Part shown: positions 19,939 through 22,900 of the stretch, in pieces | Numbering within the stretch: position 1 is the stretch's first letter | Layout of the letters: each line of letters begins with the position of its first letter | Assembly (NCBI RefSeq): GCF_001194135.2 | Contig: NC_068986.1 | Location: forward strand, 26,288,921 to 26,352,920 | DNA from: Octopus bimaculoides | Lineage: Eukaryota | Length of the DNA stretch: 64,000 nt | Direction of reading: 5' to 3' | Translations under genes and position numbers: made by a program | The notes under the pieces: model-generated | What the model saw: only the letters and a program-made list of their open reading frames with translations | What the model was told of the DNA's origin: nothing | Database searches by the model: none

Positions 19939-22900
19939 TTAAGAGTCATCACTTTCTGAACTGTTATCTTGGTCTTTTCTGTTTTTTTGTTTTATTGGTA
20001 ATGGACCATAGTTCTGAGCAGCATCATTTGCAATGTTTTCATTGTCCCATATAATTAGCTTTTCAAATTTGTTTGCTAGAATATGGGGATTCAATTTTAA
20101 TGGACGGTTGCAAAGGCTCTGGCTTTGCTTGTTCTGTCTAGTTAGATGTTCAGTTGGAAGTCTGTAACGACTGTCAAAGTCACAACTTCCTCCTGACTTT
20201 TGACGAGTTTGCTTTTTTTCACATTGGTTCTTTTCTGCAGCATATTTCAATGAGTCTGCTTCAGTTGCTGATAGCAGTTGTTCTTTCGGGCTTAGAAAAG
20301 ATGCTGTTCGTCTGCTTCCTGTTTGCTGTCTTCCAGTATGAGTTTCACTTTTGCGTTCTAGGTTCACTCTATCTTTTACTTTCATTTCATTAAAACTATC
20401 ATTTATATTTGATGACTTGCTTTGATTTGGTTTCTTAATATTTAATTTTGTTGGATGTTGTTTCTGTGGCTTCTTTAATAGTGGGTGATTTGCAGAATCT
20501 GGTGATCGTTGCATATTTGATATATTACATTGCTCTTTGTTTTTTTCTCTTTTGTGTTCATGGATCATCTCGGGTTTTTTACTTCTGTGTTCTTCAGACT
20601 TCCGAGATTTGGCTGTGTCTCTGTGGGATGGAATTGGTTGTAGGCTATTGTCTTCACAATAAATGTTTAAATGTTTTGGCAAGTATTCTGAGCCAGTTGA
20701 AAATTGTTTTCCTTGCAGTTCTGTTATATAATGGCACAGTGCTTTAGGGGACAGTTCATCAACCTGAAAGAGTAGCATAATTTAATATATTGAAGTACCT
20801 TTTTTTTTTTCTTTTTATTTGTTGTCTTTTTTTTAAGTAATAGGTTTACTTACTTCATGTTCAATAAAAAAAGGTTGTGTTGCTATTGGTTCATCAGAGG
20901 GACAGCAGTAACTCTTTAAATAGGGGTGCTGTAGTGCTTCCTCTGCACTTATTCGTTGACTGGAGTTAACAGTTAGCATTTTCTCAATCAAATTCAGAGC
21001 TGTAAGTAATGTATAGATACTTTAGAGTAAGGGATGGTATATATATATATCTATCTTGCCAATATTTGAAAGAATTGATATTCTTCTACACATTATGTTG
21101 AGGGCCTGTTTACAGAAACAATTGGAATAAATTTAAACTGGCCATATCCAGCCTAAATATTCTACATGTCTGATGTTAAAACTAGCCTTTCAGATGTACA
21201 TTATATCATTCTAAAATACTCAGCATCAAAACTTTTAAGCTGACTGATAGTGCAAGATTAATTCCAAAGCGTGAATAAATAAGCATTGTATTTTAATAGT
21301 AATCTGAATGTTGAAAGGCGTTAAACACGTAAATTATTTCAGGATTTCTAGAAAGAGAATTTATGACTTGCTTAAACATATTTGGACAGCATATAATTCC
21401 TCACTACTACTGTCTAACCATTAGAAGGAATATTTACCTGATGGGTCTATTGTTGGATAAGTATCACGGAGTGTTTTTTCAGGTACCCGTGGAATCCGTT
21501 TCATCACACTTTTTGGCAAGACTTGAGTTACTCTGTTCCAGTCATTATCTGAGATGTTCACTAATTGAAGAATTAAACTGATCTGTTCCATATCATGAGA
21601 ACCAGGTAACAGAGGTTGACCAATCAACATTTCCATAAATATACATCCAGCACTCCAAATATCAATAGCTTTAGTATAATCATTTGGAGAAATAATTAAT
21701 TCTGGAGAACGATACCAACAAGTACCTACTTGATCTGTGAGAAAACCCTGTAAAAGATAAATTTGAGAAAGATTAAAAAGACTATGATGATCCCAAGCAG
21801 GGCTGAAGTATTTAACCATTTTGTTACAAGAGGAAGAACATTGCTTTTCAATTGGGAATAGTTTGGCTAAGGGTTTTAATTTGGTTTCAATAAATTTGTA
21901 TCAAAAAGGGCTATAAATATTTACGCCTACTTAATGTAGGGTAATGTTTAGTTGCTGGTGTGCAAACTAGCTAATTGGATAGTGCAATTTTAGCTTAGAT
22001 TGCACATTATTCACTGAAGATATTTACTTTGAAAAAGAGCAAGTACTTAGGAACCTTCGATTACAATAGGGCAGATATGTCATTTTAATGTTCATATTTT
22101 CATGGGTTGAATCATTCAGGTTTATAGCTGTATGCTTTTCCTGTTGTCAAGCATGCTAATGTCTTCAACAAAGATTGAGAAGGAAAGACACTACTTGCAT
22201 GATGGTAGCACTTAACTATGATGTGAAGGTAAGGAGACAGCAACATGCCTTTATAAGAAGCTTCTTTCAATTTCTACCAAATCTCACAAGGCTTTGGTCA
22301 ACCTGAGACTAAGTAGATGTACCTGCTCAAAATACCATGCAGTGAGACAATCCAAAACCATGTGGTTGAGAAGCAACCACATGTTTAAGACAATCTGAGA
22401 AATTTATAATCCATGGCCTCTGCCTCCTGGCTCACTTATTCGTATTTTTACTTCATTGGACACTAGACTCTGTGAAGACCTGTTGAGGAAATCGAACCAA
22501 ATTCGATGATTGGCACCCATGCCAACCTTTCCTTCATTGGATACTAAACTCTGCTTGTGAAGACCTGTTGGAGTAATTGAACCGTATTCAATGACTGGCA
22601 CCTGTGCCAGTGGAGCACTAACAGCACCCAGAGCAGCTGTCTGGCTTCCGTGCCAGCGGCACATAAATAGCACTATTTGAGCATGATCGTTACCAGCATT
22701 GCCTTACTGGCACGTTAGAAAACATTCAAGCGAGGTTGTTGCCAGTGTCACTAGGCTGGCTCCTGTGCAGGTGGCACGTAAAAAACACCATTTTGAGCAT
22801 GGCTGTTGCCAGTACCGACTGACTGGCCCTCATGCTGGTGGCACGTAAAAGCACCCACCACACTCTCTGAGTGGTTGGCGTTAGGAAGGGCATCCAGTTG

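Follow-up and report, generated by a model that had tools for sequence, protein, structure and literature searches.

Among the known systems closest to the kinase described here are ERK3 and ERK4 (MAPK6 and MAPK4) of vertebrates. Orthologs of this pair have been identified in Ciona and in marine invertebrates, and restriction to chordates was rejected in the same work (Li et al. 2011; PMC3202601). ERK3/4 orthologs were later traced to choanoflagellates, with a variable T-x-x activation loop in non-vertebrates, the serine acceptor being placed on the chordate stem and the S-E-G motif on the vertebrate stem (bioRxiv 10.1101/2024.10.01.616093); the text of this preprint names no mollusc. The partner kinase MK5 (MAPKAPK5), whose ~50 C-terminal residues are reported to be required for binding the FRIEDE motif (PMC4705221), was described in a 2012 review as one that "seems absent in invertebrates" (PMC3419095). 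We analyzed a 64,000-nucleotide stretch of the Octopus bimaculoides genome (NC_068986.1, positions 26,288,921 to 26,352,920; hereafter the window, to which all positions refer), which contains the kinase gene LOC106880733, labelled "uncharacterized protein" in RefSeq. On sequence comparison, LOC106880733 is the single-copy O. bimaculoides ortholog of vertebrate ERK3/ERK4.

A preliminary description of the window, made from its letters alone, had proposed a lophotrochozoan ERK3/4 ortholog, and both the ranking of PDB matches and a phylogenetic tree bear this out for cephalopods. By phmmer, the best PDB matches of the octopus kinase were human MAPK6/ERK3 structures (7aqb and 6yky; 381 bits), and the E-value of the kinase domain against human ERK3 (9e-113) rules out a chance match; ERK2 and ERK1 came next at ~295 bits, which leaves ERK3 86 bits ahead of any other MAPK. 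In the protein collection, the cephalopod matches were followed, in this order, by bivalve and chiton sequences (mostly labelled "MAPK4-like," "MAPK6," or "MAPK6-like"), by hemichordate and echinoderm sequences, and then by many vertebrate MAPK6. Over 319 aligned columns, identity to the octopus kinase was 56% for ERK3, 48% for ERK2, 44% for ERK5, 41% for p38, 39% for JNK1, and 38% for NLK, the NLK sequence being an unverified one.

The tree was computed by neighbor-joining from 319 columns of 26 ERK3/4-type proteins and reference MAPKs, with 500 bootstraps and support counted as unrooted splits. References were taken from or checked against PDB entries (ERK3, 7aqb; ERK2, 7e73; ERK5, 4b99; JNK1, 4ux9; Toxoplasma ERK7, 6v6a): the ERK5 and JNK1 sequences proved 100% identical to 4b99 and 4ux9, the p38 sequences were database matches, NLK had no PDB entry, and an unverified MAPK15 query returned Toxoplasma ERK7 as its best PDB match. 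The octopus kinase fell inside ERK3/4 and apart from ERK1/2, ERK5, ERK7, p38, JNK, and NLK. The ERK3/4-like split, with 27 sequences that unite mollusc, hemichordate, echinoderm, and vertebrate MAPK4/6 with the octopus kinase, received 100% support; within it, molluscs were supported at 93% and cephalopods at 100%. ERK3/4-like sequences joined ERK2 in 70% of the replicates and the unverified NLK in 10%, and JNK paired with p38 (97%) far from the octopus kinase. As derived characters, members of the clade have in common a G-x-G-G-N-G loop, the H-K-G-x-L-[ST] run leading to the acceptor, S-P-[E/R], F-x-[IV]-E-x-E, and a phase-0 intron at HK/G (a slash marks the splice junction).

Public names of the octopus ortholog conflict with one another: the O. 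bimaculoides "uncharacterized protein" was formerly "MAPK10-like," and the same protein is "MAPK10" in O. sinensis, "SLT2/MPK1-like" in O. vulgaris, "MAPK10-like" in Argonauta, and "MAPK4_6" in Sepia pharaonis. Within the 90% cluster of the octopus kinase only the Sepia name is correct, and "MAPK10-like," "MAPK10," and "SLT2/MPK1-like" are annotation errors. A transcript-derived sequence from a Logan assembly (P0093, 871 amino acids) is also ERK3/4-like; its loop reads H-G-G-V-L-T-E-N, it has SPE and FHIEYE, and its placement near molluscs is insecure (33% bootstrap).

The gene lies on the minus strand as four coding exons (23637..19939, stop included) separated by three introns, all GT-AG, and its spliced product of 619 amino acids is 100% identical, over 100% of the length, to the NCBI RefSeq model (XP_014786298). 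Its features are, in the direction of transcription:

23059..23637, minus strand: coding exon 1, M1-K193, identical to the RefSeq model; it encodes GIGGNG (amino acids 32-37), VAIKK with K54, FRE of helix alpha-C with E70, HRDLKPSN (158-165), and DFGLAR (179-184).
21748..23058, minus strand: intron 1, GT..AG, phase 0, between K193 and G194, 1311 nt.
21438..21747, minus strand: coding exon 2, from G194 into codon A297 (first base only); encoded here are GFL-T197-D198-Q199 of the activation loop (21738..21730), GTCWYR of the P+1 loop, and S207-P208-E209 (21708..21700).
21000..21437, minus strand: intron 2, GT..AG, phase 1, interrupting the A297 codon, which follows S296.
20854..20999, minus strand: coding exon 3, A297-E345, with the common-docking acidic patch PSDEP (amino acids 330-334).
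20874..20854, minus strand: the L16 motif PFFIEHE (amino acids 339-345), the last codons of exon 3.
20764..20853, minus strand: intron 3, GT..AG, phase 0, directly 3' of the FFIEHE codons.
19939..20763, minus strand: coding exon 4, V346-S619 and TAA; the L16 helix, then the C-terminal extension.

The two peptide strings on which the preliminary description relied, an 18-residue activation string and PFFIEHE, are both present on the minus strand. The interval 20854-21747 given for them runs from the exon 3 donor (20854) to the first base of exon 2 (21747), and the "HK" that precedes the acceptor region lies beyond it, at the end of exon 1 (23064..23059); because of this, the activation string (amino acids 192-209) exists only once intron 1 has been removed.

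Shared intron positions had also been offered as an argument for orthology. We mapped exons exactly in five genes, from scallop (L001), medaka MAPK6 (L002), Saccoglossus (L003), Argonauta (L004), and bird p38 (L005). Two of the three octopus introns match hemichordate and medaka MAPK6 in both position and phase, but only one of them is informative. Octopus, Argonauta, scallop, Saccoglossus, and medaka MAPK6 all have the phase-0 intron at HK/G in the activation loop, which bird p38 lacks. The phase-1 intron at x/A, before ALxLhEKM, occurs in the same five and in bird p38 as well (ANPL/AVDLLEKM), and is thus an ancient MAPK intron that says nothing on orthology. The third, of phase 0 after F-x-I-E-x-E, is a mollusc intron, since of the genes mapped only those of scallop and Argonauta share it with octopus.

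The spliced sequence confirms the single threonine acceptor, the SPE triplet, and the F-x-I-E-x-E motif reported earlier for this kinase. The loop T197-D198-Q199 offers one acceptor followed by an acidic residue at +1, and it has no tyrosine. Across the clade, the loop and the subdomain VIII triplet read as follows:

Cephalopods: T-D-Q, with SPE.
Bivalves: T-D-N, T-D-G, or T-D-C, with SPE.
Chiton (Liolophura sinensis, P0020): T-D-R, with APE; H-R-G replaces H-K-G.
P0093: T-E-N, with SPE.
Echinoderms: T-Q-N, with SPE.
Hemichordates: S-E-N, with SPE.
Vertebrates: S-E-G, with SPR.

These sequences fit a common frame, Y-x-H-K-G-[FYH]-L-[TS]-[DEQ]-x-[VIL]-x-T-x-W-Y-R-S-P-[ER], in which the third loop position is free among molluscs (Q, N, G, C, or R). 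T-D-Q was for that reason rejected as a conserved signature, and the aligned loops do not sustain its earlier presentation as a distinct motif, T-[D/E/Q]-x with SPE being the general non-vertebrate state. A literal S-E-G is absent from the octopus kinase and, among the members sampled, is confined to vertebrates. Instead of the S-P-R that replaces A-P-E in vertebrates, octopus has S-P-E; the serine is common and the arginine is found in vertebrates only. S-P-R thus marks vertebrate ERK3/4, and not the whole orthologous group, because its arginine is a vertebrate derivation; nor is the change from alanine to serine fixed across the clade, since the chiton has A-P-E. From the alignment, T-D-Q with SPE would be the cephalopod variant of T-[D/E/Q]-x with SPE as the state ancestral for non-vertebrate ERK3/4, and S-E-G and S-P-R are, on the same comparison, vertebrate derivations. 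The idea of an intermediate between TxY-APE and SEG-SPR is reasonable, but it holds for the whole non-vertebrate grade and not for the octopus gene in particular.

In ERK2, three arginines hold phospho-Thr183 (that of HRD, that after DFG-L-A, and one of helix alpha-C), and R189 and R192 hold phospho-Tyr185. The octopus kinase keeps the counterparts of the phospho-threonine pocket (R159 in HRD, R184 in DFGLAR, and R69 in helix alpha-C). At the position of R189, just after the threonine of the P+1 loop, it has Cys203 (21718-21720). Cysteine stands there in every mollusc ortholog (GTCWYRSPE), arginine in hemichordates and starfish, glutamine in sea urchins, lysine in vertebrates, and threonine in P0093, a variability that would be expected once the tyrosine site had gone.

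The F-x-[IV]-E-x-E motif is present in 26 of the 26 clade members sampled that span the region. FFIEHE of octopus (amino acids 340-345) occupies the homologous L16 site, directly after the common-docking patch, and is a putative MK5-binding motif; cephalopods have FFIEHE or FYIEHE, bivalves FHIEHE or FHIENE, P0093 FHIEYE, and vertebrates FHIEDE. Downstream, invertebrate members keep an ERK2-like L16 helix, VD[DE]LSPKxL+xxI, where vertebrate ERK3 has VDDILLMDE. In several characters the invertebrate proteins thus appear to stand between ERK1/2 and vertebrate ERK3/4.

The likeness to vertebrate ERK3/ERK4 extends from clade membership, identity to ERK3, and the GGNG loop to the H-K-G-x-L-[S/T]-acidic-x loop with its single acceptor, the serine that replaces the alanine of A-P-E, F-x-I-E-x-E in L16, the HK/G (phase 0) and x/A (phase 1) introns, and a long C-terminal extension for which a single large exon, the last, codes. 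The octopus protein differs from them in having threonine for serine, D-Q for E-G, SPE for SPR, FFIEHE for FHIEDE or FRIEDE, the ERK2-like helix for VDDILLMDE, and a shorter extension (274 amino acids against about 400), which cannot be aligned with the vertebrate C34 region and tail except at a DFDS island. Its direct orthologs are the "MAPK4/6-like" proteins of molluscs, hemichordates, and echinoderms (for instance Mizuhopecten "MAPK4-like," Mactra "MAPK6," Sepia pharaonis "MAPK4_6," Saccoglossus, and Strongylocentrotus "MAPK6"), whose loops read T/S-[D/E/Q]-x and which also carry SPE and F-x-[IV]-E-x-E. With other molluscs it shares GTCWYRSPE, all three intron positions, and islands in the tail that include KVKDR.N.E+R; bivalves and chiton differ from cephalopods in the third loop residue (N, G, or C in bivalves and R in chiton, against Q), and bivalves also by FHIEHE where cephalopods have FFIEHE or FYIEHE. 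ERK1/2, the sister group in 70% of the replicates, resemble it in the threonine acceptor followed by an acidic residue, the DEP of the common-docking patch, the glutamate of the APE motif, and a DDLPK-type L16 helix; they differ in that octopus has T-D-Q for T-E-Y, a cysteine for the phospho-tyrosine-binding arginine, GGNG for GAYG, the F-x-I-E-x-E motif, and a C-terminal extension of 270 amino acids.

For the MK5 partner we used a human sequence, validated by its 98% identity to mammalian proteins named MK5. Among the best 120 matches of this query we found no invertebrate MK5, all being vertebrate. A search of a 50% representative library with mammalian MK5 yielded full-length matches that span the MK5-specific C-terminus in Ptychodera, amphioxus, a calcareous sponge, and Argonauta hians. 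When one of the Argonauta sequences (P0252) was used in turn, every named protein among its best 120 matches was MK5/MAPKAPK5, never MK2 or MK3. These matches included Octopus vulgaris, O. sinensis (XP_029650968), Sepia, many bivalves, a chiton, and gastropods among molluscs, and elsewhere Lingula (a brachiopod), annelids, ambulacrarians, tunicates, cnidarians, and sponges. The last ~50 residues of MK5 are conserved in an alignment of 11 species, with no variation at W441, G443, F446, V450, or A456 (numbered as in human MK5), and T182-P, the activation site, is retained in the O. vulgaris protein. There are two MK5-like entries for Argonauta, and the Octopus MK5 models are 883-886 amino acids long, with a long extra region (P0252, P0398, P0485, and P0486 are MK5 entries of our set). 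An ERK3/4-MK5 module in the cephalopod lineage is plausible from these sequences; it is supported, short of proof, by the occurrence of the partner in the genus and by constraint on the docking region of that partner. That the pair, long regarded as specific to vertebrates or chordates, is an ancient animal module still operating in cephalopods, with T-D-Q, SPE, and FFIEHE docking, is a more tentative proposition, which we rate at somewhat less than even odds.

The explanation that best accounts for the locus as a whole, to which we give a probability of roughly 0.8, is that of a competent ERK3/4 ortholog with a one-site switch at Thr197, docking of FFIEHE on MK5, and ancestral-type T-D-Q and SPE motifs. 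By analogy with the vertebrate kinases, a Thr197 switch coupled to FFIEHE-mediated MK5 docking would be its most likely mechanism. The kinase would be switched on by phosphorylation of a single residue, Thr197 in H-K-G-F-L-T-D-Q, the positional equivalent of Ser189 in ERK3 and of Thr183 in ERK2; phospho-Thr197 would be read by the retained basic pocket of Arg159, Arg184, and Arg69, and Cys203 in place of the phospho-tyrosine-binding arginine (R189 of ERK2) would fit such a one-site switch. The upstream kinase would most likely be a group I PAK, or the kinase itself by autophosphorylation, rather than a dual-specificity MEK. Phosphorylation of the loop would in turn expose FFIEHE in L16, which could dock on the ~50 C-terminal residues of MK5.

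Several points weigh against this explanation. For molluscs, we infer the PAK step, the phosphorylation of Thr197, and MK5 docking from homology. FFIEHE has a histidine for the aspartate of the vertebrate FHIEDE and FRIEDE, and a phenylalanine at position 2. The Argonauta MK5-like paralog P0252 is without the T182-P site (LTASYCTPYY). The MK5-type module that the preliminary description had deduced stands as regards orthologs in O. vulgaris, O. sinensis, Argonauta, and Sepia, but within the genus MK5 turned up by name only in congeners, not in O. bimaculoides itself. The tree is distance-based only, and its human NLK and MAPK15 sequences are unverified. Finally, a regulation nearer to that of classical MAPKs is conceivable, because the threonine acceptor, the APE-type glutamate, and the DDLSPK helix are all kept.

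This last point leads to the main live alternative, which we consider unlikely: an ERK3/4 ortholog with classical behavior, in which a MAP2K of the MEK type phosphorylates Thr197 within a three-tier cascade, MK5 is not a dedicated partner, and the PAK/MK5 wiring first arose in vertebrates, along with S-E-G and S-P-R. Besides the ERK2-like helix DDLSPKxL+xxI, lost in vertebrate ERK3, and the association of ERK3/4-like sequences with ERK2 in the tree, invertebrates keep the acceptor preferred by MEKs and the APE-type glutamate (SPE, or APE in chiton), and a functional change on the vertebrate stem has been argued for (10.1101/2024.10.01.616093). Against this, the tyrosine acceptor is gone in every bilaterian member sampled, and constraint has been lost at the position by which ERK2 binds phospho-tyrosine, where C, Q, K, T, or R now occurs. 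A pairing limited to vertebrates is also hard to explain because F-x-I-E-x-E and the C-terminal docking region of MK5 are conserved across the same phyla.

It is far less probable that the octopus gene is a decaying or functionally redundant relic. Pre-vertebrate ERK3/4 have been suggested to be redundant or non-functional and hence often lost (10.1101/2024.10.01.616093), and among the best 120 matches of the octopus kinase we found no gastropod, annelid, brachiopod, cnidarian, or arthropod ERK3/4, the absence of the gastropod, annelid, and arthropod orthologs speaking for such a relic. But the frame is intact over the four exons, and all catalytic motifs are present, with K54, E70, HRD, and DFG unaltered. 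Compared with Argonauta hians (89% amino acid identity over 355 codons of the kinase domain and L16), the ratio of nonsynonymous to synonymous divergence (dN/dS, Nei-Gojobori) is 0.045 for this region and 0.17 for the C-terminal extension, values that are approximate because dS between the two octopod genera is about 1.3, near saturation. Since dN/dS is low, and the introns and the tail-to-tail EF2 neighbor are kept in Argonauta, a relic or pseudogene is excluded for practical purposes, and strong purifying selection would be acting on a gene for a catalytically competent Ser/Thr kinase. Gastropods, annelids, brachiopods, and cnidarians do occur among the matches of Argonauta MK5, unlike among the best 120 ERK3/4-like matches; their ERK3/4 are either more divergent or lost, and MK5 may be more widely retained than ERK3/4.

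Least probable of all is that the gene is another MAPK, of the JNK, ERK5/SLT2, or NLK type, as automated names within its own 90% cluster imply and as the likewise single-acceptor T-Q-E loop of NLK, an atypical MAPK without the tyrosine acceptor, might suggest: the identities to JNK1 (39%, verified against 4ux9), ERK5 (44%), and NLK (38%, unverified sequence) fall well below the 56% to ERK3, the PDB ranking and the 100% ERK3/4-like split point the same way, the GGNG loop, S-P-x, and F-x-I-E-x-E characterize ERK3/4, and the cuttlefish ortholog is already named MAPK4_6. A JNK identity was accordingly rejected (the T-P-Y loop is absent, and JNK groups with p38), as was an NLK identity (10% of the replicates), NLK differing further by its APE, its other glycine loop, and the lack of F-x-I-E-x-E.

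The C-terminal extension of the octopus protein (~260-274 amino acids) is basic and of low complexity. Two islands in this otherwise fast-evolving tail are kept across molluscs (P0004-P0021), at amino acids 472-483 (20350-20385) and 540-552 (20181..20143), one of them with the consensus KVKDR[LV]N.E+R.E. Another island, VVVDLPDEENKKEQ[LI]SPKE, is found in bivalves, cephalopods being without it. The tail of vertebrate ERK3 has KLIIDLSNWKEQSKEK and then FDFDSFIAGTI, in the same order as the mollusc islands. In a search of 12 sequences, a mollusc-tail profile matched vertebrate tails only marginally (E about 1e-3), and the matches were confined to the DFDS island and, for bivalves, to VVVDLP..KEQ against KLIIDLSNWKEQ; no similar islands were found in hemichordates or echinoderms. 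The likeness between mollusc and vertebrate tails may reflect homology or chance.

Upstream of the coding region, a polypyrimidine tract and an AG acceptor (ttcttccag, then ACTGGAGA-ATG; 23638-23660) lie 8 nt before the start codon, which suggests at least one upstream non-coding exon in the 5' untranslated region. A stretch of intron 1 at ~22440-22850 (about 600 bp by another estimate) is richer in G+C and contains diverged direct repeats of 54-55 nt with a spacing of 67-116 nt; it has several spurious open reading frames and probably represents an interspersed repeat. A 35-mer taken from this stretch had no second copy elsewhere in the window, and Rfam and tandem-repeat scans around the kinase gene returned nothing relevant. 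An EF2 gene of several exons (~13146-19425, plus strand), recognizable by its C-terminal KFLDKL, lies tail-to-tail with the kinase gene, and the same convergent order is seen in Argonauta hians (L004, 3729-4430, minus strand, GTP_EFTU..EFG_C). The window as a whole has a G+C content of 34% and several assembly gaps (35607-36204, 53067-53134, and 57624-58091, also 18727-18736 and 26346-26355), two large ones being bordered by microsatellites of the (TATA/ATATAC) type that translate as "YIYIYI."

These data indicate that the octopus gene is not a new kind of system. The novelty claimed for it does not hold: chordate restriction was rejected in 2011, the T-x-x stage was described in 2024, and invertebrate MAPK4/6 are widely annotated, many mollusc orthologs already carrying MAPK4/6-like labels, so that loops of the T-D-Q type are in substance catalogued (PMC3202601; 10.1101/2024.10.01.616093; database labels). 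What is new is small, namely the right identity of the octopus gene, the mollusc-wide T-D-x/GTCWYRSPE signature, the mollusc tail islands, and the finding that F-x-I-E-x-E and the C-terminus of MK5 are conserved together. The value of the finding is mainly corrective, in that an octopus gene misannotated in RefSeq/GenBank ("uncharacterized," "MAPK10," "SLT2/MPK1-like") becomes a MAPK4/6 ortholog. Together with the wide distribution of MK5, it makes outdated both the view of ERK3/4 as chordate-restricted and the statement that MK5 "seems absent in invertebrates" (PMC3419095). If the DFDS island of molluscs and vertebrates is truly shared, it would point to a functional element, not described before, within the C-terminal extension. 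The invertebrate series from T-D-x, T-Q-N, and S-E-N to S-E-G, and from SPE to SPR, offers natural variants for testing the odd motifs of vertebrates, and, if the ERK3/4-MK5 pair is indeed an ancient module still at work in cephalopods, molluscs would provide an ERK2-like version in which the origin of PAK dependence and of MK5 docking could be dissected.

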